IMG/VR virus record: IMGVR_UViG_3300035670_000008
Span: 124,001 to 188,000 of that record
DNA: 64,000 nucleotides
Direction: 5' to 3' (one strand)
Shown here: positions 5,201-27,852 of the stretch, piece by piece
Position numbering within the stretch: the stretch's first letter is position 1
How the letters are laid out: each line of letters starts with the position of its first letter
Notes under the pieces: generated by a model
What the model was told of the DNA's origin: nothing
Database searches by the model: none
Seen by the model: the letters and a program-made list of their open reading frames with translations, nothing else
Program-made: the position numbers and the translations under genes

Positions 5201-8200
5201 ATTCGCTTGAAGCTGATGTCAGCCGATAGCCCACTGCTGATAGGTACGACAGTGTTGTACACCTTACCAAGTAGCGAGCCCCCGGTAATCCCCATGATGG
5301 CCTGCATCGAGCCGAAGTTCTCTGGGTCGGTTACAGTACCCCGCACGTTAGCGAACACCTTATTAACGCTCATCATCGACATTACCGTCGACTCCATCTG
5401 AGCTTGATATTCGGACACCGCCTGGACGTAGTCGTCTTTGGTGTAGCTACCTTTATCTAAGTAGGCTTGGTAGAAGGAGCCAGATTGCTCAAATTGACCA
5501 GACCAATACTCGAAGTTCTCCCGGACGCGGGTCTGCTTCTCGTTGGACAGTTTACCGAAGCCTTCATCCCAAGTTAAGGAGCCTTGTTGGAGCCTGCCGT
5601 CTGTGTCAAACTCAGCAGCATTAATATGAGAGTATTTACCTAACTCCCCGCCCATCAACCCAGTATCGAAGTTGAAGCCGGATAAGGTGTCTACGAACTG
5701 CTTGATTAAGCCGCGTAGCGCCTCGTCTTTAAAGACGGTGTTCTCCGCAATCTCCTTACTACCAATGACTTGTTCTGGCAGCGCTAAGAAGCTGCCGATG
5801 TAGCTACGCAACCCTTCGTAGGCTCGGTTTATCTTCGAGGTTCGGGTGGCTTCTACCTCGCCTAACGCTGCTTTAATCGTCTGCGTAGCGACGGATTTAA
5901 AGTTTTCTGCTTGTTGAATGGACGCAGCCTTCTCGGCCAGCTGCTCTTCTAAAGATTCAACCAAAGCAGGAACTGGGGTTGCCATATTTCTAGCTTTTAC
6001 TAGAGCAGCTTCTATCTGCTCTTTCTCTCTGGATAATCGGCGTAGCTCTACAGTCCGCTGAGCAATCTCCCCGGTCATGTTATTGACTCGGCTGAGGGCG
6101 GCTTGGAAGGAGTCCCCGTCGTAGTCTCCTAAACCAGTAAACTCAAAACCGAAGGCGCTGACTAACATCAAGGCAGAAGCCGAGGTCTCATTAGAGGTTA
6201 GGAAGGTGTTTAGCTCCCGACCCCGTCGGTTCGTTTCTGTAATCTCGATGGCTTGTTTAAAGAGGCTGTTGATTGACTGCCCATCGGTTGGGTTGCTGGT
6301 ATAGAACGGTGCCCCTTGACGGCCTGTTAGGACAGCCCCTAGCCCAGCTCGGTACTCAATCTCATTCTGGACTTTAGCTAGGTTCTCCTGGTTAACTGGT
6401 TGACCACTGATAACGGAGGCAACGATGATGTCGATGTTCTCGTTGTTAACCAGCCGACGGTGTAAGTCTTCCGGGGTGATGTTTGCACTTTCGTTTCCGT
6501 AGTGGTAAGCGTAATCTCTTAGTAGCTTTGCCCACTCACGTAGCTGACTGTTATACTTCGCCAGGTCGGGATAGTCTTGGTATATCTCAGCTTCTTGCTT
6601 CAACAGCCGAACGGTTTGTTGGTCTACTGAGTCAACGACAGCTCCAGTGCTGGGATTTATTATATCCTCGACGCCAGCATACAGCTGCCTAGAAGCTATT
6701 TCAGTTTCGTATTGATTTACTGTGTCTTGGCTTAGCGACCCCATGTAGGCATTGGCTTGGTCTAACCTTGCTTGTTCTACTGGGACATAACGAGCCGTTG
6801 GGTTATTAAGTTGCGCGGCTGCGCGTTCGATGGTTAACTTGCTCTGCTGGTACTCCAACAGATTCTCTGCTACAGTCTGACGGCCTTTAGCGGCTTCTTT
6901 GGTCAGTCCATAATCAATATTCAACCGGAAGTACTCGGGACCCCCGTAAGCAGTACGTTGGGATTCGACGTAACCAATAGCGGCTTCAACCTGGGCTAAG
7001 CGGCTTTGCAGCTCGGCTTGGTTACCTAACACTGATACACCTGATTGAAGTTCGTCGTATTGTCTTTGAGTTAGTTTGTTACTTAGTCCTGTACCTTGGA
7101 TGAAGGTTTCTTCCGCAGTGTAACCGCCAGCTAACCGCCGTTCCAAGTTGGCTTTGATTTCATTTAGCCGGTCAACGATAAAATCGATGTTCTTACCGTC
7201 TTCCTTACCGTAGGCAACTGCTCTAAGCCGGTTAGTGTAATCTATAACCTCCTGCATCTGAGCTAGGTTAGCTGCCTGCTGTTGTGGAGAGCTGGAGTCA
7301 TATTGTACATATCCCCAGCCGATGTACTTCTGCAGCTTTAATTCACTTTCGATAACGTTCTGATAAGCCTTGTGCTCTTCAGACAACCCAGCGTGGGCAG
7401 CCTGGCGAGCTGGTAATTCCGCAGACTTCTCAGCTATCTTCGTGTCTAACTTTCCAATTTCAGTTTTTATTGCGGCTAACTCACCTGGAAGCTTAGTAGT
7501 GTTATCGGCTTGATACCCTTCTAACTCAGTTACTTTATCTCTCATGCCTCCAATTTTTTGGGTGAGGTTCTCAACCTGCCCGGTGAGATACTGGGGCCAA
7601 CCGTCTTCGTTATAGAAGAATGAATTGTCTGGTATTGGCATCCCAACTGGAACGGCTTCAGGGCCTCTTAACCCTAGGTCAGCAACCATAATATTACTTC
7701 TGGCTCTAGCCTGTAGTTGATTTGCTCTTTTCAGCTTGGCATAGAGGCTGTCACCTTGTTCTATAGGGAACAAGACGCTAGCCGCCTTCTGCCTAGCTTT
7801 AACGCCGTCTATACTCTGAGCGTCAAGGTCAGCATCCCCGAACATAAGTGCGCCAAAGAAACCTCCAAATTCACCTCTAGATAAGTATGCAGCTCTTACC
7901 ATCGGAAAGCGGCTATCTCTAACGGTGTTTAGTTGCTGCTCACTTGGATTGAATAAGAAGTTGGTGTAACCTTTGATGTCTGATTGGGTCATTAGCCGCT
8001 CGGTCACGGCGTCTAACCGAGTTAATGCACCTACGTTTTCGGGGGTGACCGTTTGGTTTACACCTAGGTCAGCCAGCCCCGCATTGATATTAGTAAGGAT
8101 GTTGGGTAGTCTGGTGTTGTTTATCTCGTTATAGGCACCCTCTAACGTAGGTATCATATTGTCTACCGCGGCTAACAAACTCTGCCCCCGCGGAGTCAGT

Positions 8201-11200
8201 TGGTTTACAGCTATACGTCCGGTAGCTTGACTAGCTGGGACTACTTCAAAGAGTGCCCTGACGTTATCGTTTACCTGCGCAGCGAACTCTCTTTGTTCTT
8301 GTTGACTGAGTTGATTTAAGTCACTCGGCATATTGGAAGGTATAATACTTCCTTGGGCTACGCTGTTATACCTTGTTAGATGCTTCTCTAAAAACCGCAT
8401 TTGCCCGATAAAGTCCCGTGCGGAGTAGGGCGGCACTTCGTCGGTAAGTCCTATAGCATTTTCTATTGAAAAGACAATTTTATCGTGGTAGGTATCTCCA
8501 AACTGGTTTTGGTTGGTTAGCGTATTAATTTTACGACCTATAGCAGGCAGTACTCTGCTGTTAAGGTTCTGGTAGGTGCTGGCTTGGTTTAAGAGCCAAT
8601 TCCATTTATTATCTACGTTCCGTCTTGCCCGCTGAACTCTGGTGTTGTGTCCCTCTCCTGATTGGTCGTAGGGGTTTCTGATGTCGTAGTAGCGGTAATA
8701 GTTTAGGCTGGCTTGTTGTGTGCGGATATACGCTTCTTGCTCAGCAATTTTTTGCTGTTTATCGACGACTTGAGCTTCTTTCTTAGCGATAGCTGCATTT
8801 TTCTCGTTGATTCTCTGCTGCAGCTCCATCTGGTTTTTAACGTAGCCGCTTCTTGTGTTGTAGTGATAAGCTATCTGCTTACTTCTTTTAGCCTCTAACC
8901 GGCTGATTTCATCCTGTCTATTCTGCAGGGATTCGCCCGATACACCAAAGTTGAGCCGGTCACGCTGTTTAATAATGGTGTTCTCGCCTTTAATGTAGCC
9001 AAGGCTAACGTCTAGGTTTCTAATCCGCTGCTGGTTAACCTTCTGCTCTTCTATGAAGGCAAGCTGTGTTTTGACTGGGTTTTCTGTGCCTAAAGGTACT
9101 ACTCCACTTAGATAGGTGTTTCTTACTTCTACTAGACCCTTAGCTGAACGTAAAGCGTTCTCGATAGTATCTCTATCACCAGAGATTTGGGCTTGCCGTA
9201 GCTTTTGAATCACCGACTCGACTTCGTTCTTAACAGTGCCATCCGTCAGCTCTTGCAGTAGTTCTTGAGCGTATTCAATTTCGTTGGTAATCGTCAGTTC
9301 CATCAGAATCTGACCCTTACTTCCTAAAGCAGCAGCTAAGCGGATGGCTTTAACATCCTTCCTGATAGATTTATCGATGGACGAACTTAGCCGGCGGATA
9401 CCGTTTCCGGCAGTCAGCCCCGCTGCCCGCTCCACCCGGGAGCCCATTCCTACCTCGTCCATCCCGACCAGGAAGCTGTTGACGGCTATATAGGAGGTAC
9501 CGCTCATCCCCATCCGGTTGGCGGTGGCCTGGCGGATGCTGTTTTTGTTGTGTACGAGTTCTACCGCCGTCTCTTTCGACTGCTGCATTAATACCTGCAG
9601 TTCTTGGAGCTCTACAACCTCTTCGTCAGTAATTGTGGAGGTGCCGACACCTTGTAACGCTCCGAGTTGAATCTTATCAATCACGGGCTGTAAGCGTTGT
9701 AGCTTCGCTACTAATTTGAACTGAGCTTCCAATGCCGGGTGGGACTCAGCGTTAAATAGTAGGCTGAGCTTCTGTAGGATATCTAAACCAAGTAACACCC
9801 CTGTCTGAGCGTTACGGTCTGAGCCTACAGTAACTACGTTTAGCCCCCGGCCCTGAGTATCCAAACTATGACGGTCTAATATCTCAATACTTGGCAGGCT
9901 AATCATCCGCGTTGTGCTTAACGATTGCATAATCGTCTTAGCTGACTCGCGTTGTAGTCTCCCTTCAAAGTCGCCTTTATTCCGGTAGTACTCGAACTGC
10001 TGCTGTGCTGATTGGTATAGAGACTCCATACCTTCTAAATATTCCGCGCCAGTATTCATATTGAAGGTATTTTCCACTCGCGTTCTGACTTGCTCCCGGT
10101 AAGTCTCGGTTATGGCATTTAACGCTGCATTCGTAGCTAACGCGCGTGTCCCGGTAGCATTATAGTTTCTCAGATATTCTTTCTGGTAAAGAATATCCTC
10201 ACTATCCTGGTCGTATAGGTGGGTCGTGTTGAGACTGGTATTAATTGGAGACTCCTGCCGAGAATACAACCTATCTAGAAACTCCTCCATGTTAAACTCG
10301 GCTATTCCCAGTTTTGCTTCTTCTAACCGGGTCTCTAGTGCTGCCATAAACGTGGGGTTGTTGGCAGCTTTATGTCTGAACTTTCTGTCCAGCCGAGTTC
10401 TAGTTTCTTCGAGGACTAAGTCAACTCTGCGGTTGATATTAGCCTCGTAGTCTAGGTTATTACCCAGGTTACGGCGAGTGATGTCTGCATAGTCCATCAT
10501 CTGCTGCAGGGCAGGTAGATAGCTGTTACTGTCCTGCTTTTGGTGACCTTGTTTAATAAACTCACTAACGGCTTTAGTCCCTAACGTTCTAGTCTCTACC
10601 CTTCCTGATGAATCAACGTTGCCTGGTAGCTGATGCCGTCCGAAGCTTGTGTAGTGAGTTAGGTACGTATTGATAAAGTCGTAGGTAGTGTTCTGTCCAA
10701 GAGAGAGGCTTAATCCTAGGCGTTTAGTTGTGATATCTTCGTTAAACACCAACGCGGAGAGGTCTGAGTTAATAGCCCGATGCTCCGTAGCGTTAGTTAT
10801 TAGTTGCGGAGTCAACCCTAATTCTGTTTGAGCGATATGTTGCACAACAGCGGCATCCCCGAGGTTGTGCTTCATAATCCCGTAGCTGTCTTGGACTTGA
10901 CGGTGGGTAGGGACAACGTTCTCGTAGACGATGGCTAATTGAACCAAGGCATGTTGAATTGTACCGACGTCGGTCAAATCTTTCGGGTTATAAGCATACA
11001 TCTCTAGTTGCTTAGCAGTTAAGCCTTGGGCATAGTGTCCTTCTAACGCAGTGATATTCTTCATCCCCGCAGGCACTGCGAGTTTACTCGGCTCATACTC
11101 GCCAGGTAATTCAATAAACCGCTGGGTCTGAACGTAGGTGCGGATAGCTTGGTAGACCGCTTCCACCTCATGGAGCATCTGCTCTTCTTCAGAGGTGATA

Positions 11201-18980: not shown

Positions 18981-20450
18981 ATGGCTGACATAACTTATCC
19001 CGACAAGCGCTCCGTTCGTAAGCAGACAAAACAGCAAGGTCGTTACAACCTATATAACGCGCTTCGCCGACCGCTGATGTCGAAGCTACGGTTATACGAA
19101 CGTATGGCTCGCCAAGACTTAACAATCCGTTCAGCCCTTAACACCCGGGTAGATTCAATTATTGGAACGATTGGAGATGTCATACACCCAGACGAAGAGA
19201 TTCAAGAGTTTCTTAGAGACAGCCTTAAACGCCTAGAGGATGGTTCGGGTAGAAACTTTAAGTCGTGCCTACGAAATATTCAGTTCACAACAGACTGGGC
19301 AGGCTTCTCTGTGTCAGAGGTCTGCTATGCCTTCGAGAAAGGGCAGTTAGTGTTAGACAACGTTCTAACTTATCACCCTTCTTCCTTAGTCATCTATCCA
19401 AATAAGAAAGGTCTCCTAGTGGACGGGGAGGAGACAATGGATGGCTACCACAAATCAGGTATCTATCAGTATGCACTTAACTACGCTCCAGCGGAGCAGC
19501 AGCTAGACCTGTGGAAGCATATCTACTTAGGGCGGGATTGTGACTATGGCAACTACTATGGACATTCGTTGGTAGCTCCGGCTTACAAGTGGTTCCGGCT
19601 AAAAGAGGTGCTAATCGAGATGATGATTAGTGCCATGAACAAGTTAGGCAACCGACTACTGTGGATTCGCTCGCATAATACTCCTACTGAGGAGCTGGTG
19701 CTTAACCCAGCGACAGGAGAAGAGCGCCCTTTAACAACGCTAGAGTTAATTCGTAATCAGATTGAATCTAACGAGGGGGCTTTAGACACCCTGTTATTGC
19801 CGCAGGTCTCGCCGGACTACAAACCTGAAGTCGGCTCGGTGCAGATGTCTGATAACTTTGGGGATACCTTCTTAAGCACGTTAGCTTACGTTGACCAAGA
19901 GTCTGTTAGACACATCATCCCTTACTTCTTATTAATGGATAACAACTCCAACGAGTCGGCTCGGGAACGCCGGATGGAGATTTACTTTAATGATGTCTAC
20001 AATCAACGAGAAGCTTTGATTAACGCTGCAGTAATGAAGATTCTTATGCCGCTTCAGACCTGGAACTTCTCCAAGGCTGCAGCAAAGATTCCGCCGACGT
20101 TTGCCCGAGTCTACTCCGACAGACCAGAAGACCGCGTAGCCACAATGCAGATGGTTACCGGACTGACGGAGAAAGGTTATCTCAACCCAACTCACCCAAT
20201 GGATTGGAGCATGGTTCGGGAGATGTCCCGCTTGGCTAACCGGGATATGGAAGACGCAGATATCGAGTTTATTAATCAGGTCGTCATCGAACCTCTCCAG
20301 AAGCCGGAGCCAGCTCCTGGGTCGGAGGTCGTTAAGAAGCCAACGGCTGGAAGACCGAAGGGAGTGTCCAAACCAATCAGCGGGCGTCCCCCAGCTAAGC
20401 CAGCCTCGAGCGGCTCAACGACTAAGAAAAACTTGAAGGCCGGAGGGTAA
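18981..20450 (+). CDS. Portal protein (Mu gp29 / DUF935-like, 489 aa)
   Basis: Features include GFSVSEVCY, 'LTYHPSSL', 'GHSLVAPAYKWFRLK', a helical core and a basic low-complexity tail. It heads the head module, upstream of the protease and capsid genes. Confidence 0.8.
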   Translation: MADITYPDKRSVRKQTKQQGRYNLYNALRRPLMSKLRLYERMARQDLTIRSALNTRVDSIIGTIGDVIHPDEEIQEFLRDSLKRLEDGSGRNFKSCLRNIQFTTDWAGFSVSEVCYAFEKGQLVLDNVLTYHPSSLVIYPNKKGLLVDGEETMDGYHKSGIYQYALNYAPAEQQLDLWKHIYLGRDCDYGNYYGHSLVAPAYKWFRLKEVLIEMMISAMNKLGNRLLWIRSHNTPTEELVLNPATGEERPLTTLELIRNQIESNEGALDTLLLPQVSPDYKPEVGSVQMSDNFGDTFLSTLAYVDQESVRHIIPYFLLMDNNSNESARERRMEIYFNDVYNQREALINAAVMKILMPLQTWNFSKAAAKIPPTFARVYSDRPEDRVATMQMVTGLTEKGYLNPTHPMDWSMVREMSRLANRDMEDADIEFINQVVIEPLQKPEPAPGSEVVKKPTAGRPKGVSKPISGRPPAKPASSGSTTKKNLKAGG

Positions 20451-21060
20451 GCACCCCTGCATCCAAGAACGCAGTTCGGTTCAGCTCGGCCTCGGCTACT
20501 AGATGAATATGGTCGCAATCGCGGATGGTTCCGAATTCATCACAGGAGCATTGTCCAAGTTTAACGATATGCTCTAACCAACTGGGGGTAGTAACAATAA
20601 AGTGAGACCCCATTACTTCTTTCACTGAGTAGCCGTTCATCACACACTCGGCAGCTATGTAAGAGCGCCGTACGTTAATACCTTGGTCTACCAAGTCTTT
20701 GACGATTGTTTTAACCCCATTATGGGTATAAACAAGATTAGCACCTAGATACTGCGCGTCAGTAATCTGCCCCAATATGGTGTTGTGTAGAAACAGGTAG
20801 GCGAGGGCTCTACCAGTGTCAAGAGGTCCTTTACCTAGGATGAGCCGGTGGAGGTTAACTCGGGTATCAATCGTTAACCAATTACAGACCATAGAGTCCA
20901 AGGTTTTATAGTCTACTCGAATTGGAAGTTCTTTGTTGTTGTCTTTTCTTAGAACCGTAAGCTCTAAATAATCTGCTCCTAGACTGACAGAATCTTCTTG
21001 GAGGCACACTCTATAGTCTAAAGTGTGTAATGTTGCAGCCAGGTACTTAGTATTCCACAT
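20422..21060 (-). CDS. SWIM zinc-finger protein (212 aa)
   Basis: C-terminal CSCDEFGTIRDCDHIHLV matches the SWIM CxC-x(n)-CxH signature, preceded by the usual beta-strands (YSVKEV...HFIVT). It overlaps the portal 3' end convergently by 29 nt. Confidence 0.7.
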   Translation of the reverse strand: MWNTKYLAATLHTLDYRVCLQEDSVSLGADYLELTVLRKDNNKELPIRVDYKTLDSMVCNWLTIDTRVNLHRLILGKGPLDTGRALAYLFLHNTILGQITDAQYLGANLVYTHNGVKTIVKDLVDQGINVRRSYIAAECVMNGYSVKEVMGSHFIVTTPSWLEHIVKLGQCSCDEFGTIRDCDHIHLVAEAELNRTAFLDAGVLTLRPSSFS

Positions 21061-21120
21061 AAGTTAACTTGGTATATAGGTTAGCTTTCCTTTTGCTATT
21101 TTCCCCGTTTTCTATGTGAT

Positions 21121-21897
21121 ATGAGAGACTTAGATCTGCTAAATACGTTTATTGAACAATCGGCGAATAAATTTGTTCCAGCCAAGATAGACAGTGGTGC
21201 TATCAATAGCCTCAGTCTTCAACTGGATGCTCCGGTACCTCAACGACAGGTTTTCTCTAATGCAGTCGTAGCAGAGCCCGAAGAAGAGTTTTTCGTAGCT
21301 ACGCCTGTATTAGACGACGAACCTGAGGAAGAGCTAGAAGCTGAACCAGAGCCAGAACCAGAAGCCGAAGCTGAACCAGAGCCAGAGCCAGAACCAGAAG
21401 CGGATGAAGAGCCTAAGGAAGTTGCAAAGCAGAAGTTTTCTGCCCACCAAGGTGACGTTCCTCCTGGATTTAAAGTATCCGTTTCTTGCGCCAACTGTGC
21501 CTATTTCATCTGCTGGGATTATGAGCAAGATCACTTCTGCCGTAAGCATGACTTCCCCTGCGCAGCTAACTACACTTGCAACGACTTTAAGTCTAAGCGG
21601 GAAGCTGACGAGGAGGCTCACCAAAGGTTTATAGAGGAGGTTAGCGAAGCCCGGGAGGTATTTGCCGACGCAGCTGCTAGCGCTTCTGAAGAGGCGACAG
21701 AACCAGAAAATCAAGAAGATTATCAGTCTGTTCTCCAGAAGTTTAGCGACGCTACGCTGGCTGACGAAGTCTTAACACTAACTCAGAGTCGTTTCTCCAA
21801 GCGGTCTATTTATGCCGACGCGTTTTTAGACATGCACTACCGTAGTGAGTATAAGCGACGTAATGGAACTTTAAAGGGAGCTTTTATCGAGGAATAG
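21121..21897 (+). CDS. Head-module protein with an acidic Glu-Pro linker and a four-Cys motif (258 aa)
   Basis: EPEEELEAEPEPEPEAEAEPEPEPEPE linker, SCANCAYF...FCRKHDFPCAANYTC motif, and a basic C-terminus (SIYADAFLDMHYRSEYKRRNG). Its stop is 5 nt before the protease ATG. Confidence 0.7.
   Translation: MRDLDLLNTFIEQSANKFVPAKIDSGAINSLSLQLDAPVPQRQVFSNAVVAEPEEEFFVATPVLDDEPEEELEAEPEPEPEAEAEPEPEPEPEADEEPKEVAKQKFSAHQGDVPPGFKVSVSCANCAYFICWDYEQDHFCRKHDFPCAANYTCNDFKSKREADEEAHQRFIEEVSEAREVFADAAASASEEATEPENQEDYQSVLQKFSDATLADEVLTLTQSRFSKRSIYADAFLDMHYRSEYKRRNGTLKGAFIEE
21337..21402 (+). repeat. Coding low-complexity repeat (Glu-Pro/Glu-Ala)
   Basis: gaagctgaaccagagccaga occurs at 21337 and 21367 (30-nt period), plus gaacca/gagcca hexamer iterations. 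Confidence 0.85.
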
Positions 21898-21902
21898 AAA
21901 GT

Positions 21903-22958
21903 ATGCCGTTGTCCATCGAACTAAAAAACGACCAAGATTTATTAAGCGTCAGCGAGACGACCGAGGAGAAGTTCATTAAAGCTCCCGTCGCTCGTCTAGG
22001 TAAATGGAAGCACGACGCCTACGGTAAGGTTGAGTTCTCCCAGCAAGACTTTGACGATATGACCAATAACTGGAAGAATAACGCCGCTGGGTTCGAGCCG
22101 CCTCTTTATCTAGGTCACCCTCGTAACGACAAAGCTTGGAGTGGCGCACCTGCCGTTGGCTTCCTAAAGAAAATGGTTCAAGAGGGCGACACTCTCTTTG
22201 GGCTATACGAGCCTGTAGACCAAGGGGCCTTTGAAGATGTCAAACAAGGAAAGTACCGTTACGCTAGCTCCGAGGTCTATCGCAACGCTAAAGATAAAGA
22301 AACCGGTGCCACCATTGGTACATTATTGACTGCCCACGCGTTAACCAATGAACCCTACCTAACCAAGTTGCCTAGGGTAGAAGTGACAGATAAGTTGGAG
22401 CTCAGCAACCCCAACGACACCACTCGCTTTGTATTTTCTCAAGAATCAACTACCTGTACAAAAGAGGTAGTAACTATAAATGCTATGACACAAACCACCG
22501 AAGTCACATCAGAAACAACTCCCGCAGTTGACGAACGGTTCGTCAACCTACAGCAGGAGAACGAAACACTGCGACTTGAGCTCTCTGATAAGAACAAACA
22601 ACTTGCAGAACTCCAGGACGCCGTCGCTGCTATTAAGCAAGAACTTTCCATTCATACCGAGCGAGCCAAGAAGCAGGAACTTTCTGATAAGTTGGCTCGG
22701 TTGAATAAACTGAACGTCTCTGCAGCCACCAAAGAGAAGTATACACAAATCTTTACGGAAGGGTCTCTAGAGCCTTCTAGTGAAGAAAGCATTTTCTCTT
22801 TACTGGAAGAACTCTCCGCCGGCAACGTCGAAAAGTTCACCAACGTCCAGGGCACCCAAGAGAAGACAGAAGAGACTGCTGTTGAAAACCCTTATTCAGA
22901 TACTATCCTTAAGCTCGCTGAGCGTGCCAAGGAGCTAGGTCGTGAATTTGTAATCTAG
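21903..22958 (+). CDS. Prohead protease/scaffold (Mu-like prophage I protein family, 351 aa)
   Basis: LYLGHP, APAVGFL, KYRYASSEV and LTAHALTNEPYLTKLP are typical of Mu gp32-type proteases. The C-terminal part is an acidic coiled-coil scaffold. It lies directly upstream of the capsid gene. Confidence 0.85.
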   Translation: MPLSIELKNDQDLLSVSETTEEKFIKAPVARLGKWKHDAYGKVEFSQQDFDDMTNNWKNNAAGFEPPLYLGHPRNDKAWSGAPAVGFLKKMVQEGDTLFGLYEPVDQGAFEDVKQGKYRYASSEVYRNAKDKETGATIGTLLTAHALTNEPYLTKLPRVEVTDKLELSNPNDTTRFVFSQESTTCTKEVVTINAMTQTTEVTSETTPAVDERFVNLQQENETLRLELSDKNKQLAELQDAVAAIKQELSIHTERAKKQELSDKLARLNKLNVSAATKEKYTQIFTEGSLEPSSEESIFSLLEELSAGNVEKFTNVQGTQEKTEETAVENPYSDTILKLAERAKELGREFVI

Positions 22959-22998
22959 ACCCAGTGGATTAACTACTATTTAAGGAAATAAGCTAAAC

Positions 22999-24291
22999 AT
23001 GCCTCAAGAGTTTCACCCCGAGATTACAGATTACCAATATATTGGCGACTTGCCTGCCCTTGGTAGTCTACAGCTAACTAAGCTAGCCCGCGGATTTGAA
23101 GTGGCGGAGATTGGTCAGTTGGATGACCTGTTCCCCAGCCAAATGATTAACGAACGGACTATCGTCATCGAACAAATCATCGAAGGTCTGGGTATTATGC
23201 CCTTGGCTCGCTTTGGTGTTCCTGGCGGTGGCTTTATTGAGCCCGACCGGATTCGCTCGATGCGCGTCACCCCGGCGGTCGTTCGTGAAGAAGATTTCAT
23301 CGAGCAAGCGCTCATCAACCAACTCCGTCAGCCTGGTACCTTCAACCAGCAATGGAGCCCGACCCAGATCATTCAACAACGGGTACAAAAACTTGTTAAC
23401 CGTCACCGCCGTACCGTTGACCTCTTCCGTGCCAAAACCCTACTGGGCGGCATCAGCTACACCGACCCTCGGACAGGTGTCAGCATTGATGTCAGCACCA
23501 ACATTCCTGAGCATAACCTGTTCTCTTATAAAGGCTGGAATGCTGCTGTCGCTGCTGGTACCGTCGTTAACGGCTTTACTGCTGACTCGGCGCTGACCAA
23601 CGATAAAGGACGCCCTGAAGCCTTCTTCTTCCGGTCTACTGACGAGCGCTTCGGTGTGCCCTGGACTGACCCCAAAGCTGACCTGGCTTATACGATTCGT
23701 ATGATTAAGCAGTACCTGCTGAATACGAACAAAAACCAGTTCACTGAAATCATCATGCACTCTGACTTGATGACTGTTCTACAAGAGAACAACCTAGTCA
23801 AGTCCTTCATGGGTCTACCCTACGCTCTCAACACTACCGGCACCCAAGCGGCCTACACCCCCGCCAACAACATGCCGCCCTCCAGTTTCTTGGTACTCGG
23901 CCCCGGCGGTGACTTAGCCTCCTTAGGTGGTTTACGGATTCGTGTGGTTAACGGGCTGTACCGTAACCCCGTCACTAACCAGATTGAGAACTGGTGGCCT
24001 GCCCATAAGGTAGCTATCGTAGCTCCGACTCACATGAATGACTCCAGCGCTCGGTTGGGTCTAACTCAACACTGCGTCGGTGAATCTGAAGACGGACAAC
24101 CCGGTGTTTACATGCGCGTCAGCCCCATGAGCGCACCCCCGGCACCTCCCGGACGGGTAATGCAAATGGGTGATGCCTTCTTGCCCTTTGCTATCTATCC
24201 CCACTGGATTTGTCTGCTGGATGTTTGTGAGCCTGATGAACTCAAAACCAAGATCATCCTACAAGCTGACCTGAACTATGGAACGTTCTAG
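22999..24291 (+). CDS. Major capsid protein (HK97 fold, lambda gpE-like family, 430 aa)
   Basis: Follows the protease/scaffold. It has LDDLFP..., 'TIVIEQ', 'LFRAKTLLGG' and 'DPKADL' elements, strongly C-ending codons and an AAGGA ribosome-binding site upstream. Confidence 0.85.
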   Translation: MPQEFHPEITDYQYIGDLPALGSLQLTKLARGFEVAEIGQLDDLFPSQMINERTIVIEQIIEGLGIMPLARFGVPGGGFIEPDRIRSMRVTPAVVREEDFIEQALINQLRQPGTFNQQWSPTQIIQQRVQKLVNRHRRTVDLFRAKTLLGGISYTDPRTGVSIDVSTNIPEHNLFSYKGWNAAVAAGTVVNGFTADSALTNDKGRPEAFFFRSTDERFGVPWTDPKADLAYTIRMIKQYLLNTNKNQFTEIIMHSDLMTVLQENNLVKSFMGLPYALNTTGTQAAYTPANNMPPSSFLVLGPGGDLASLGGLRIRVVNGLYRNPVTNQIENWWPAHKVAIVAPTHMNDSSARLGLTQHCVGESEDGQPGVYMRVSPMSAPPAPPGRVMQMGDAFLPFAIYPHWICLLDVCEPDELKTKIILQADLNYGTF

Positions 24292-24418
24292 ACCACCGGT
24301 GTCTATACTTGTTCACTCCTCTGATAAGGTTATTGACTTGAAGGATGAGAAGACTAAGCAGGAACAACCGAATACGCTTCGCTTTCTTCAGTCAAACCTT
24401 TCTTATGGAACTTTTTAA
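24278..24418 (+). CDS. Small ORF (46 aa) whose C-terminus repeats the capsid C-terminus
   Basis: Below the track cut-off. ATG at 24278 lies inside the last capsid codons in the +1 frame. It reads MERSRPPVSILVHSSDKVIDLKDEKTKQEQPNTLRFLQSNLSYGTF*, against a capsid end of ILQADLNYGTF*. Confidence 0.5.
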   Translation: MERSRPPVSILVHSSDKVIDLKDEKTKQEQPNTLRFLQSNLSYGTF

Positions 24419-24449
24419 CCATCATCTGATTAAGGACGGCAATAAATAA

Positions 24450-25496
24450 ATGGCTACAGTACCTTTAACTGGAACTCCTGGATTTCGTTTTTTATGGCAC
24501 CTCTATCCGAGTGCCCGTAGTGGTGGTCTTAGCTACTACCCCTACTACAGCACCGTAGAGCAAGGTTTGGCCCCCAGCTGGACTCCCCCGGTTGCTTCTG
24601 GTCTGACCGATGCTCCTTCTTCCTATACGGTTGCTATCTCTGCCGGTCGTGCCTACCTGGACGGTGAAATCGCTGTCTTGACCGCTGGCCAAAACGTCGC
24701 GGTTAACCCTGGTGACCCCCTGTTCGCTCCCCCGGTTAACGGCGTTAACGACTACCCTATTTACCTGAGCCCCACCCGGATTCTTCAACCCGTGGTTAAA
24801 GGTGACACTCCTCCGACGACTTATCTGAACGGAGCTGCTATCACCGCTGGTGCCCAGTACGCTGAATGTGTTGATTTCGGTGAGTACCTTGGAGCTACTG
24901 ATTTCTATCAGTATAATGGGACTACCTGGGCTAAATACGACCCCACCTTTGCAGCTCCGATGCTACCTGCTCAAGCTGGTAAGAACCGGATTTACGGTGG
25001 TGGTATGGTTCCTTCTGTTGGGGCCAACAACCTAACGGTTCGGGCTCAAGAGAAACGAATCTACATTGAGAACAAGTACCCCCCGTACACCAACTCTAAC
25101 TCCAAAGCACTCCTCCGGGATGGTTGTTCCTTGGAGTTGGCCAATGTTTCCCTGTACTACTTCGTTCTCCCCCTCAGCATTAAAGTTGCCACGACGGCTA
25201 GCTCTGCTACCATTACGACTGACGCTGCTACGGCTGCCGTACTGGCTGATATGGTTGCTGCAGCTGGTAGTGTTGGCGCTCTTGCGGTCAAACTTACTGG
25301 ACCTTCTGGGTTCTTCACCGGCGGTGGAGCTTCTTCTAACATTACTGCTATTAGTGGTACTAACATCACTACAGCTGCTACAGTAGTAGCTAACAACGCT
25401 GAAGTTACTCTGACCATCGAGCCCCAAACGGCTGGTCTTATTTATCTTCTGGCCCCCGCTAAATCTGCGTTGTTGGTAAACAGCATCCCTGTCTAG
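24450..25496 (+). CDS. Putative head decoration / structural protein (348 aa)
   Basis: Follows the capsid gene with the same highly-expressed codon bias. It contains TVAISAGRAYLDGE and an Ala/Thr-rich beta C-terminus. Confidence 0.5.
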   Translation: MATVPLTGTPGFRFLWHLYPSARSGGLSYYPYYSTVEQGLAPSWTPPVASGLTDAPSSYTVAISAGRAYLDGEIAVLTAGQNVAVNPGDPLFAPPVNGVNDYPIYLSPTRILQPVVKGDTPPTTYLNGAAITAGAQYAECVDFGEYLGATDFYQYNGTTWAKYDPTFAAPMLPAQAGKNRIYGGGMVPSVGANNLTVRAQEKRIYIENKYPPYTNSNSKALLRDGCSLELANVSLYYFVLPLSIKVATTASSATITTDAATAAVLADMVAAAGSVGALAVKLTGPSGFFTGGGASSNITAISGTNITTAATVVANNAEVTLTIEPQTAGLIYLLAPAKSALLVNSIPV

Positions 25497-25508
25497 ATTT
25501 AACTTCCA

Positions 25509-26099
25509 ATGCCTAAGCAAATCTTAGCTGTCGCGCCTGTCAATCTTAGAATTGCCGGGCGCATTTATTCAATTGAAGCTGGCAAAAGCCTAGCTGTCTC
25601 CGACGATGAATCCCAGATGATTATGTCTGGGTCTTCATCTAGCAAGTTCAAACTCATTGGTGACTTTATGTCAGAAACTCCAATTAGTATCCACAGCGCG
25701 GGGCTGCCCACCTACGCCCCGCCTAAAACCGCAGCTCCAAATCTAGCTGCTCATAAGGACTGGGCAACACCTTTCGTGCCTGGGACTGTTCCTGACCCAA
25801 TAGACGACGTCTATAAGTTTAACGCAGAGGCTAATAAGGATTTTTACCAAGCCGTTCTGGAATTACCGGGGGACCCCATCTCAGCGGATGGTCCTTTACC
25901 TGAAGCGTCAATCTCTCAACTACCAGAACGGACGCCTATTACCCCTGACACCCACTGGTCTAAGGTCAAAGCTCACCTGTCGGTGATAGCTAAACAAGAG
26001 CCTATTAACTATGGAGAGGTAGAGGAGATTCGTCAGATGTTCTCTAAGTCCCCCTCCATCAGAGTTGAGTGCGACCGTATTCTAGCCAACCGTCCTTAG
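25509..26099 (+). CDS. Hypothetical protein (196 aa), head/neck region
   Basis: ORF packed in the operon. No recognisable motif. Confidence 0.6.
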   Translation: MPKQILAVAPVNLRIAGRIYSIEAGKSLAVSDDESQMIMSGSSSSKFKLIGDFMSETPISIHSAGLPTYAPPKTAAPNLAAHKDWATPFVPGTVPDPIDDVYKFNAEANKDFYQAVLELPGDPISADGPLPEASISQLPERTPITPDTHWSKVKAHLSVIAKQEPINYGEVEEIRQMFSKSPSIRVECDRILANRP

Positions 26100-26106
26100 G
26101 AGCGCC

Positions 26107-27852
26107 ATGACTAACACCTTTAGCTTTGCTGATAGGTTTTCTTATCCTCAACCTGATGGCATCAGCGTCGGGGTCAACACTACGTTGGCTCAGACCCTCA
26201 CAGACGAGGAGATCGAACAGGAGTCACCAGAGCTAAAGGTAATGGCGGATATGGTTCGCCAATATTCGGTACTACTTAAACGAACCAGAACGTTAGACAT
26301 CTTTAATATTATTACGACGCAGTCTGACCCACGGTGCGCTTTAATCCTAGCCGCAGCTAAACGGAAAAGCACCAACCTACCAATCTTTAAAGGGATTGAC
26401 GAGGTCAAGCAAGTTATGTTCAATGACGGCAGTAGGAATAGCAACCCGTCCGTGCCGTTAAGCCAGACTCTAAACAACCAACTCTTCAGTGATGGTGTGC
26501 GTCGAGTCAGCGCTGCAATGACCGCTGCTATCCTTATCGGACAGCTACCAGAGATACAGCGAGAGTACGCTCTGGACATCGAGAAGCGAGCGATTGAAGA
26601 CTTAGACCGGATTATTGCTACCTACGAAGCGCAATCTGTCCTACCTAGTACTGACAAAACAGCCGAGCCTGCCCCGATTGCGTTCTTCTTCGAGCCGAAA
26701 GACATTGAGCTTGACCCTACAGTAGAAGTCGCGCTGGAGTGGTACTCCCCTTCGATTGTTAACAACTGGATTCCGGTTCAAACCTATACTGGGAAGTTCT
26801 CTACTTGGCATTTGGTTAGTGACTTGGCTGACTCCATGAACATGTACACCAGCCAGGATATCGACAAAGCGTTGCTAGCCTCTGCTGAGTTGTCTGGCCC
26901 GCTGCTTGGCTCCACATATTACCACACGTTGTCCTTTTATCCACGTAAGCCGATCAACGGTGTTCTAGGTTATTCCATCAATGTCAAAATCGAGACCCGA
27001 CCAATTAGTTCTCCGTCAGAACCTCCCATTACTATGGGTGGAACCACAGCTGATGAAGCTGACGACATCTATGGTCGCTCTCCATTCGAGTGGGGGCCGT
27101 ACCCGTCGTCTATTGATACTTATCCTATTAACGGTAAGATTATCGTTCTTTATTTTGGTAAGTCCGCTGCTTTAGACCCCAAAGAGCTGAACGATGCGTA
27201 TATCCCGACCGTCCTTTATTTTAGAAACAAGATTAAATATACCGGCGTACCCAGCGACCCTTTAGACCCAGCTACGTTGGTAGAGCCACCCCAATCTACT
27301 CCGTTAACCTTTAGAGTGCAGCCCTGGCATCCAAATATCGCAGCTATTGCTAGCCAGCCGGTAGAGATAACTGTCCCCTTTGACCGGCTGCTAGAACAAG
27401 ACGGTAGCCCCAGTCAAGTTGATTTAGATAACTCCCGCTACTCGCAGATAGCTGTGCGGTTGCTGTATGAAATGTCTTACATTGACTTAGCTACGAAAGC
27501 GACTGGCTGTATCGTCCGCAATGATCCTGTAGAGCAGAGTCAACCACTATCTGGTCTAGAGTTAGTAGCGTGGGGGCTTAGTAAATCAGTTTCTCATATC
27601 GTCTTGGATGTTCTGGAAATACCAAAGGATATTGAAATGGCAACAGGTGATTTAACTGGACCGAAGACCTCCTTTAGCTCCAACCCGCGTTCGCTACGGG
27701 TGAAGGTACAGAATGAAGCCTTCGCAGGCAACGCGGTCTTAGAGGGGGCAGCAACCTACGAGCCGATCGGTATTGTGCCGAAGACCAATACTAAAGTCTG
27801 GCGCTCCATCTTAGAAGAAGCCAGCTCCGTTGAAGACTCCCGGTACTATTAA
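26107..27852 (+). CDS. Putative head-tail adaptor (Mu gp36-like N-terminus) with a long C-terminal extension (581 aa)
   Basis: aa ~120-170 (GVRRVSAAMTAAILIGQL...EYALDIEKRAIEDLDRII) resemble the helical bundle of head-completion proteins. It lies between the capsid and tail genes. Confidence 0.45.
   Translation: MTNTFSFADRFSYPQPDGISVGVNTTLAQTLTDEEIEQESPELKVMADMVRQYSVLLKRTRTLDIFNIITTQSDPRCALILAAAKRKSTNLPIFKGIDEVKQVMFNDGSRNSNPSVPLSQTLNNQLFSDGVRRVSAAMTAAILIGQLPEIQREYALDIEKRAIEDLDRIIATYEAQSVLPSTDKTAEPAPIAFFFEPKDIELDPTVEVALEWYSPSIVNNWIPVQTYTGKFSTWHLVSDLADSMNMYTSQDIDKALLASAELSGPLLGSTYYHTLSFYPRKPINGVLGYSINVKIETRPISSPSEPPITMGGTTADEADDIYGRSPFEWGPYPSSIDTYPINGKIIVLYFGKSAALDPKELNDAYIPTVLYFRNKIKYTGVPSDPLDPATLVEPPQSTPLTFRVQPWHPNIAAIASQPVEITVPFDRLLEQDGSPSQVDLDNSRYSQIAVRLLYEMSYIDLATKATGCIVRNDPVEQSQPLSGLELVAWGLSKSVSHIVLDVLEIPKDIEMATGDLTGPKTSFSSNPRSLRVKVQNEAFAGNAVLEGAATYEPIGIVPKTNTKVWRSILEEASSVEDSRYY

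Follow-up and report, generated by a model that had tools for sequence, protein, structure and literature searches.

Why should a phage major capsid gene be followed directly by a short open reading frame whose product ends in almost the same residues as the capsid protein itself? The window examined here, a stretch of 64,000 nucleotides of a phage genome of 216.5 kb, contains the major capsid protein (MCP) gene ending in LQADLNYGTF-stop, and an ORF in the +1 frame, overlapping the end of this gene, that ends in LQSNLSYGTF-stop. In the initial annotation, this arrangement was described as a re-encoding of the capsid C-terminus 127 nt downstream with synonymous changes, and was proposed to reflect selection on the peptide, in the form of either a frameshifted capsid isoform or a free peptide mimicking the capsid terminus as an assembly modulator or decoy. 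The observation was found to be correct in all its details. The interpretation was supported in part: selection on the peptide is supported, and of the two forms proposed the free peptide is favored, while its role as an assembly modulator or decoy remains inference.

Identification of the tail copy

All translations were made with table 11. The last ten codons of the MCP, starting at 24259, and its stop read CTA CAA GCT GAC CTG AAC TAT GGA ACG TTC TAG, while those of the +1-frame ORF, starting at 24386, read CTT CAG TCA AAC CTT TCT TAT GGA ACT TTT TAA. Seven of the 10 residues are identical, the stop falls in the same place, five of the seven shared residues use different codons, and 21 of 33 nt are identical. 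Among the total of 257,714 stop-free 10-mers in six frames of the whole genome, this was the only one besides the MCP itself with at least 7/10 identities, and five shuffled genomes gave none above 6/10. Only these two ORFs, among those of 20 aa or more in the genome, end in [YFW]G[TS][FYW]-stop. In a profile-profile comparison of eight mini-ORFs against 77 MCPs, the last 12 columns, and only these, were aligned with E = 4.7e-5. These observations indicate that the similarity is more than chance.

The assignment of the capsid gene is sound, as supported by matches to Pfam Phage_cap_E (1.5e-15) and the PHROG major head protein (1.3e-42), and by an AlphaFold model with an HK97 fold like lambda gpE. 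In contrast, the mini-protein gave no Pfam or PHROG hit at E <= 0.01, including the known families of head decoration, cement and scaffold proteins, and no usable hit in the ESM Atlas. A word search found only four called proteins, all from this clade. The features of the locus are summarized in Table 1.

Table 1. Features of the capsid gene end, the mini-ORF and the downstream genes (positions in the window)
Position	Strand	Feature	Remarks
22999..24291	+	MCP gene	430 aa; predicted HK97 fold, Phage_cap_E type
24253..24288	+	MCP C-terminal 12-residue tail IILQADLNYGTF	Conserved in nearly all of about 80 homologues (G428 and F430 nearly invariant); coil with lower pLDDT in the monomer model
24278..24280	+	ATG of the mini-ORF	Built into MCP codons Tyr427-Gly428 (TAT GGA, 24277-24282); 11 nt before the MCP stop, giving a 14-nt overlap (24278-24291)
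24278..24418	+	Mini-ORF	46 codons plus TAA; +1 frame relative to the MCP; the only open frame between the MCP and the next gene in all six lineages
24293..24316	+	N-terminal hydrophobic motif PPVSILVH	Semi-conserved (P-V-x-[IL]-L-V-H in 4 of 6 lineages)
24317..24370	+	Hydrophilic linker	Hypervariable sequence; contains both amino acid differences from the closest relative (D23N, T26I)
24371..24418	+	Conserved tail NTLRFLQSNLSYGTF plus stop	L34, L37, S39, G44 and T45 invariant; third codon position most variable
24419..24449	+	Spacer	Shine-Dalgarno-like AAGGA (24432-24436) for the next gene
24450..25496	+	Gene 2	348 aa; conserved directly after the MCP in all relatives; C-terminal beta-barrel weakly resembles a chain in the solved capsid entry of Arthrobacter phage Bridgette (weak match in a fold search)
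25509..26099	+	Gene 3	196 aa; no tail copy here, but the homologue in the sister clade carries one in the -1 frame behind a slippery heptamer

Conservation and selection of the mini-ORF

The possibility had been raised beforehand that the region is not conserved and is merely a decaying duplication or a chance match. The ORF was compared among relatives (L numbers below denote sequences of related phages). Six diverged lineages (window/L002, L013, L020, L014/L015, L016, and L017/L018), with MCPs 83-100% identical, keep an open frame of 45-48 aa, the same ATG and the same stop-adjacent tail, L..[FL]L.S...[YF]GT[FY]-stop, while the middle is unalignable. The MCP dS between lineages is 1.4 to more than 2, so that neutral sequence would be randomized. 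The other two frames carry stops in most lineages, and many in the more diverged ones.

The dN/dS ratio in the frame of the mini-ORF was 0.36 (L017-L018) and 0.37 (L013-L020), against 0.7-4 in the other frames, although the counts are small (15-25 changes per pair). The closest pair, the window and L002, has two non-synonymous and about one synonymous change, too few to test. Within the tail, the mean pairwise difference by codon position was 0.35/0.31/0.60, and thus the third position is the most variable. Gene conversion is excluded, because the two termini are only 64% identical in DNA within a genome.

The start codon is also kept through the codon choice of the MCP. The Tyr codon that supplies the ATG is TAT in all six lineages, even though TAT:TAC is about 1:1 in most of these genes, but it is TAC or TTC in all relatives without the ORF.

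A non-functional scar, left by a tandem duplication or by module exchange between related phages and drifting towards loss, was considered because phage genomes are mosaics, and because the head block is itself a recently exchanged segment (about 98% identical to L002, against 50-70% in the flanks). In addition, relatives with MCPs 57-74% identical lack the insert, and the origin of the ORF probably was such a duplication. A scar, however, would not stay open and keep its length, start, stop position and 12 tail residues in six lineages separated by saturated synonymous divergence, nor would it show the frame-specific dN/dS. Moreover, the same tail is kept under selection in a dual-coding segment of another clade (see below). 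This reading is largely refuted and is considered very unlikely.

Whether the whole ORF is a copy of the last 37 or so MCP codons, through a 112-nt tandem duplication, was also examined. Only the L013 copy aligned, over about 41 residues (0/2000 shuffles). At the expected offset only L013 ranked first, and the summed rank was 23 of 415.

Mode of expression

The mini-ORF lies in the +1 frame, overlaps the MCP end, and the +1 frame is open from 24275 onward. Since extended capsid forms made by frameshifting are known (PMC5009743), a fraction of ribosomes might shift +1 in the last MCP codons, adding about 43 residues that end in a second copy of the tail, comparable to T7 10B or Listeria phage PSA Cps. 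In four lineages, however, a +1-frame stop sits 1-2 codons before the ATG, so that the shift would have to occur within AC TAT GGA ACG TTC TAG. No codon in this stretch allows tRNA re-pairing in +1 or -2, and neither an X_XXY_YYZ heptamer nor CCC_stop is present, nor any site of the kinds known for phage capsid genes (CCC_UGA, ACA_CCC; PMC5009743). TTC-stop is equally present in relatives that lack the ORF. No stimulatory RNA structure was detected, as the fold of 24270-24460 gave z = -0.33 without any Rfam match. The ATG conserved through codon choice would not be needed for a fusion product. A capsid isoform is thus very unlikely, even though the sister clade appears to use a frameshift to attach the tail in another gene.

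With respect to alternatives to a protein product, no terminator or promoter was found in the spacer, in addition to the absence of an RNA fold signal and of an Rfam family. As for transcription, a contig from a metatranscriptome library spans the MCP 3' end, the ORF and gene 2, but this is weak evidence. No Shine-Dalgarno sequence precedes the ATG of the mini-ORF, and translation and initiation at this ATG are inferred from sequence alone.

The ORF ends 22-31 nt before the ATG of gene 2 in all lineages. This position, together with the start 11 nt before the MCP stop and the lack of its own Shine-Dalgarno sequence, could suggest a translational relay, in which translation of the ORF carries ribosomes from the MCP stop to gene 2 and couples gene 2 output to the MCP, the peptide itself being incidental. 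A relay needs only an open frame, yet the tail is conserved at the amino acid level with synonymous changes. Gene 2 has its own AAGGA site, and relatives without the ORF express gene 2 from a 30-75-nt spacer. A relay does not explain the tail copies on other carriers, and is considered very unlikely.

Tail copies in other clades

A sister clade (L005, L007, L023, L024 and L025) has no mini-ORF. Instead, the tail, F[FD]L[GE]RD..[YF]GTF-stop, is carried in the -1 frame of gene 3, the second gene after the MCP, directly behind a T_TTT_TTC slippery heptamer. The pN/pS ratio was 0.40 in the -1 frame against 1.33 in the 0 frame, and for YGTF-stop alone 0.09 against 5.6, indicating strong purifying selection. 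The stop is kept as TAA, TGA or TAG, and DNA identity is 0.79 in the overlap against about 0.4 in the flanks. No conserved structure was found after the heptamer. In L005 the T_TTT_TTC site lies at 5593-5631, and the predicted frameshift product is about 81 aa.

In a third clade, a free-standing 40-aa ORF (L039:9095-9217) with an AAGGAG site ends in FISSNINYGTF. This ORF lies in a replication-type gene block, which fits a head-assembly role poorly, and only two near-identical variants of it are known. The three carriers, each with a variable linker before the tail, are unrelated outside the tail, and no similarity was found between the body of the mini-ORF and the sister-clade frameshift product.

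The tail copy is not universally required, because a 91%-complete genome of the nearest MCP clade (G001) showed none, nor did four further clades within 10 kb on either side of the MCP. A weak tail-like hit in G001, ending in STDLNYGRI-stop, lies in an alternative frame of a long gene and scores at background level, and was taken as chance. The idea that each mimic tail tracks the MCP tail of its own clade was not supported.

Possible role of the mini-protein

What this analysis establishes is that the ORF, its ATG and its tail are kept under purifying selection in a clade of uncultured freshwater/subsurface phages of about 200 kb. The remainder of the model, including translation of the ORF and any binding by its product, is inferred. 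The best reading is a free, sub-stoichiometric peptide of 46 aa, composed of a short hydrophobic N-terminal motif, a variable hydrophilic linker and a copy of the conserved MCP tail with a free carboxyl end. In this view, the ORF arose from a duplicated MCP 3' end, and ribosomes that finish the MCP at TAG (24289-24291) re-initiate at the ATG 11 nt upstream, so that the peptide would be made at a fixed, lower ratio to the capsid protein. The tail would be the functional part, docking in trans into whatever site receives the MCP's own tail, either a neighboring capsid subunit, by analogy only with the C-arm of phage P74-26, or a head-assembly partner. The peptide would then be a minor capsid-bound component or a competitor that tunes assembly. 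The presence of the same tail on unrelated carriers in two other clades argues that it is a portable docking tag. A complex prediction of the MCP plus mini-protein, for which controls were not run, returned no verdict (score 0.00) and is not used as evidence either way. That the ORF is a selected, separately translated gene is considered likely, the docking of its tail at the MCP-tail site is only tentative, and the statement as a whole is held slightly more probable than not.

Alternatively, the free tail might be a decoy that titrates a host protein recognizing the MCP C-terminus, such as a C-terminus-specific protease or a capsid-sensing defense protein. The selected feature is exactly the exposed terminal motif with its free carboxylate, the patchy, clade-specific distribution and the hypervariable linker resemble accessory or counter-defense genes, and the third-clade copy lies among early or replication-type genes. 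Several defense systems are triggered by capsid proteins. No such sensor is identified, however, and a copy of a trigger would be expected to activate a sensor rather than block it. Expression coupled to late structural genes, through the MCP overlap and the gene 3 frameshift, fits a structural role better. A decoy is thus possible but unlikely.

A more far-reaching reading, which remains doubtful, is that a group of large uncultured phages uses self-mimicry of the capsid tail as a general docking tag, the same roughly 12-residue tail having been placed on different carriers by three genetic routes: a re-initiated mini-ORF overlapping the MCP stop, a -1 programmed frameshift inside another head-module gene, and a free-standing micro-gene. 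Each route would deliver a minor component to the site that normally takes the MCP's own tail, for example positions next to the portal or the vertices where an MCP arm is missing. This would be a phage counterpart of encapsulin cargo-loading peptides, derived from the shell protein itself.

Small phage ORFs are usually dismissed, and duplicated gene ends are usually read as recombination scars. Here, an ORF born, as inferred, from the capsid gene's own end has been kept for a long time, with selection on the copied tail, and two other clades reach the same end product by different coding routes. If the tail is a docking peptide, it gives a natural, minimal tag of about 12 residues for attaching cargo to an HK97-fold capsid, a handle on what the conserved MCP C-terminus binds in this widespread but unstudied capsid family, and a clean example of how a new gene arises from a partial duplication that happens to land in a frame reachable from an ATG hidden in the parent gene. 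The sister-clade site would also add a new case of -1 frameshifting in a phage head gene.

Comparison with known systems

In the thermophilic phage P74-26, the HK97-fold MCP has a C-terminal extension, the C-arm, of which the last four residues and the terminal carboxylate dock onto the E-loop of a neighboring subunit (PMC6775164). The MCPs of P74-26 and P23-45 are among the structural matches of the present MCP model, and the family examined here likewise has a strongly conserved aromatic-G-T-aromatic carboxyl end. There is no sequence similarity, however, and P74-26 has no separate gene that copies the arm.

The cargo-loading peptides of Family 1 encapsulins (PMC8346489) and the T4 capsid targeting sequence (PMC3012670) are short conserved terminal peptides, attached through a flexible linker to unrelated carriers, that direct them to an HK97-fold shell or its scaffold. 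The present tail is similar in being found on three unrelated carriers, its binding to the shell being hypothetical. Those tags are not copies of the shell protein's own terminus, and the T4 tag is N-terminal and is cleaved off.

Frameshift-derived second products of phage structural genes, such as T7 10A/10B, Listeria PSA Cps and lambda G/GT (PMC5009743), provide a minor structural product at a fixed ratio to a major one. The sister-clade gene 3 site, T_TTT_TTC followed by a 10-11-codon -1 frame, has this form, but the shift there would shorten the protein and add a capsid-derived tail, rather than adding an Ig-like or chaperone domain. In the window itself no shift site exists and the predicted product has its own ATG.

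In the case of T4 gp23/gp24 (PMC3012670), a duplicate of capsid coding sequence is retained next to the original and is given a distinct role in the head as the vertex protein. The gp24 protein is a full-length HK97-fold paralogue, whereas only the terminal 12 residues, or at most about 40, are copied at the present locus.

Genomic context

The 216.5-kb IMG/VR virus record, of which bases 124001-188000 were analyzed, is about 96% complete, and the DNA runs holding it come from subsurface and freshwater metagenomes. The head module is arranged in the order of portal (Portal_Mu), protease-scaffold (Mu-like_Pro_N, PHROG head maturation protease), and major capsid protein (MCP), while more distant members of this MCP family carry a sheath gene a few kb downstream of the MCP. 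The MCP matches Pfam Phage_cap_E and PHROG 30785, and its AlphaFold model (pLDDT 76) has an HK97 fold closest to lambda gpE, Bas63, P23-45, and YSD1. The nearest cultured relatives are Microcoleus and Microcystis phages at 27-30% identity. Coordinates of the features examined are listed in the table.

Positions of the features examined. Window, the stretch under study; L and G numbers, loci and genomes of relatives of the MCP. L002 is the closest relative of the window.
Sequence	Position	Strand	Feature	Remarks
Window	21121-21897		258-aa ORF between the portal region and the protease-scaffold gene	Long EP/EA acidic repeat (EPEPEPEAEAEPEPEPEP...) followed by a Cys-rich segment; region highly divergent from L002
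Window	22999-24291		MCP gene	
Window	24278-24418		+1-frame ORF (mini-ORF)	46 aa
Window	24450-25496		Gene 2 (348 aa), always directly after the MCP or the mini-ORF	AlphaFold model (pLDDT 77) with a disordered N-terminus and a C-terminal beta-barrel (residues 238-330); best match, still weak, a 124-aa chain in the solved capsid entry of Arthrobacter phage Bridgette (Z 7.4); may be a head accessory protein
Window	25509-26099		Gene 3	Homologues at L003:5482-6060 and L008:5195-5701
Window	22900-25500		MCP-to-gene-2 block	About 98% identical to L002
Window	20000-22800 and 25600-27300		Flanks of this block	20-50% mismatched or gapped alignment columns against L002
Window	24190-25000		Region of the metatranscriptome contig	1266-nt contig of the L002-type strain (run X7)
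L005	5593-5631		Candidate -1 programmed frameshift	In the second gene after the MCP
L007	5598-5636		Candidate -1 programmed frameshift	As L005
L024	5635-5673		Candidate -1 programmed frameshift	As L005
L025	5618-5656		Candidate -1 programmed frameshift	As L005
L023	5552-5620		Candidate -1 programmed frameshift	As L005, but without the T_TTT_TTC heptamer
L039 (G002:C1:28995-29117)	9095-9217	+	Free-standing 40-aa ORF	Very acidic K/E-rich body; MCP-tail copy FISSNINYGTF
L039	9204-9617		Gene following the 40-aa ORF	ATG supplied by the TAT-GGC codons of the 40-aa ORF, as at the MCP end of the window

The tail of the MCP and its copy

The MCP ends in LQADLNYGTF-stop, and the +1-frame ORF ends in LQSNLSYGTF-stop, 127 nt further on. 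Seven of ten residues match, and five of these seven use different codons. The re-encoding of the capsid C-terminus with synonymous changes, as described in the initial annotation, was thus confirmed. Genome-wide, this is the only 10-mer with at least 7/10 identities to the MCP end, and five shuffled genomes gave none, while only these two ORFs end in [YFW]G[TS][FYW]-stop. The MCP tail is one of the most conserved parts of the family, since nearly all of about 80 homologues end in ..L..[DN][LVI].YGTF.

Conservation of the mini-ORF

Relatives of the MCP were collected from viral contigs, assemblies, and metagenomes. All lineages with an MCP at least 83% identical, i.e. window/L002, L013, L020, L014/L015, L016, and L017/L018, keep an ORF of 45-48 aa in the same place. 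In all of these lineages, the ATG is embedded in the TAT-GG of the MCP, and the tail fits L..[FL]L.S...[YF]GT[FY]-stop, of which L34, L37, S39, G44, and T45 are invariant, while the 20-residue middle is unalignable. Between these lineages the synonymous sites of the MCP are heavily diverged to saturated (dS 1.4 to more than 2), a distance at which unconstrained DNA would be randomised. The other two frames of the spacer carry stops in most lineages, many in the more diverged ones.

In the two pairs close enough to measure, dN/dS was 0.36 and 0.37 in the ORF frame, against 0.7-4 in the other frames, and third codon positions varied most, although the counts for these selection tests are small. 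The closest pair, the window and L002, differs by 26 synonymous and 0 non-synonymous changes in the MCP and by 3 nt in the ORF, all in the linker. Against L002, the high identity is confined to the MCP-to-gene-2 block, indicating a recent exchange or sweep of just this head block. Gene conversion from the MCP end is excluded, because the two termini share only 64% of bases within a genome. Relatives with MCPs 57-74% identical lack the ORF, and there the MCP stop is followed by 30-75 nt and then gene 2. On an MCP tree, a single gain is compatible with the data (support 78/88), with L014 unresolved against the ORF-less L003/L004/L011 group. These observations altogether indicate, from metagenomic sequences alone, that the mini-ORF is a conserved gene and not a scar.

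Predicted mode of expression and origin

The ATG of the mini-ORF exists because Tyr427 of the MCP is encoded by TAT. All six carrier lineages use TAT, although TAT and TAC are about equally frequent in most of these genes, and all ORF-less relatives use TAC or TTC at that position, as would be expected of selection on a start codon. No Shine-Dalgarno sequence is present, and the ATG lies 11 nt upstream of the MCP stop, so that re-initiation by terminating ribosomes is inferred to be the likely route. A 1266-nt contig from a freshwater metatranscriptome library spans the MCP 3' end, the mini-ORF, and gene 2, which is compatible with co-transcription, but DNA can be present in such libraries.

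A +1 frameshift fusion to the MCP is unlikely. In four lineages a stop in the +1 frame sits 1-2 codons before the ATG, which confines any shift to the last five MCP codons, and none of these codons allows re-pairing. Known +1 sites of phage capsid or tail genes are CCC_UGA or ACA_CCC (PMC5009743). Examination of the region for RNA structure, terminators, promoters, and Rfam families found none. The interpretation in the initial annotation was therefore supported in part: selection on the peptide is supported, and of the two readings offered there, the free peptide is favoured over the frameshifted capsid isoform.

With respect to origin, only the last 12 residues are demonstrably homologous to the MCP end (hhalign E = 4.7e-5). 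In L013 the similarity extends over about 41 residues (LP-5-H-5-DV), with 0 of 2000 shuffles scoring as high. This would fit a 112-nt (3n+1) tandem duplication ending at the MCP stop, and such a duplication would place the copy in exactly the frame reached by the hidden ATG. The longer alignment is, however, not supported by other lineages, and this origin remains a suggestion.

Copies of the tail in other clades

All loci were scanned for stop-adjacent tail motifs. In a sister clade (loci L005/L006, L007/L012, L023, L024, and L025; MCP about 64% identical, tail L.LE..[VI].YGTF), the second gene after the MCP, the homologue of gene 3 of the window, holds F[FD]L[GE]RD..[YF]GTF-stop in its -1 frame. 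That frame has no start codon, but begins at a classic -1 slippery heptamer, T_TTT_TTC, in four of the five lineages, and is 10-11 codons long. In L023 the heptamer is absent, and the -1 frame is open further upstream, back to a C_CCT_TTT heptamer. Across the five lineages the 36-nt overlap is 79% identical, against about 40% in the flanks. The pN/pS value is 0.40 in the -1 frame against 1.33 in the gene's own frame, and for YGTF-stop alone 0.09 against 5.6, indicating stronger purifying selection on the -1 frame. The stop is kept as TAA, TGA, or TAG, while the 0-frame residue changes among K, D, and S. The predicted product of about 81 aa would consist of the gene 3 N-terminal domain, an acidic linker, and the capsid tail. 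Gene 3 has a conserved N-terminal domain of about 50 aa in all clades, and a conserved C-terminal HWSKVK...ECDRIL domain in the window's clade and clades C and D, but the sister clade that uses the candidate frameshift lacks this C-terminal domain. In the 96%-complete genome G003, the -1-frame copy is the only tail copy besides the MCP.

In a more distant clade (genome G002, MCP 57% identical), a free-standing 40-aa ORF with an AAGGAG ribosome-binding site ends in YFISSNINYGTF, with a tail score of 41 against a background of 24 or less. This ORF lies about 50 kb from the MCP, among primase- and nuclease-like genes. A second variant exists, and only two lineages represent this case, with divergence too low for a test of selection. 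No copy was found in G001 (the contig of L004; 91% complete, the clade nearest to the window's) or within 10 kb of the MCP in four further clades. IMG/VR classes G001, a 205-kb relative, as a provirus, which hints that some members of the group may be temperate. Outside the tail, the carriers share no similarity.

Possible role of the copied tail

The sequence comparisons establish that the selected element is the tail with its free carboxyl end, placed behind a variable hydrophilic linker, and that it has been attached to at least two, probably three, unrelated carriers. Two of the routes, re-initiation after the MCP and -1 frameshifting, both predicted from sequence, are devices that typically give a fixed minor fraction of a major structural product. 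In contrast, translation of the peptide, the docking-arm role of the MCP tail, and binding of the copies in trans to the same receiving site are inferred, and the single complex prediction gave no verdict on binding. The tail is coil with reduced confidence in the monomer model, which fits an inter-subunit contact. In this view, the copies could act as minor head components where an MCP arm is missing, or as competitors that tune assembly. A decoy for a host factor that recognises the MCP end is a live alternative, and the patchy distribution and the replication-module location of the 40-aa ORF of the third clade fit it better.

The mini-gene matches no described family. A precedent for a docking arm is phage P74-26, in which the last four MCP residues and the carboxylate bind the E-loop of a neighbour (PMC6775164). 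The closest functional analogues are the cargo-loading peptides of encapsulins and the capsid targeting sequence of T4 (PMC8346489, PMC3012670). Terminal docking or targeting peptides for an HK97-fold shell, and genes born by partial duplication, are both known, and we place the mini-gene, on present evidence, among them as a putative case. The unusual features are that the putative tag copies the shell protein's own tail and that it recurs through three predicted coding strategies.
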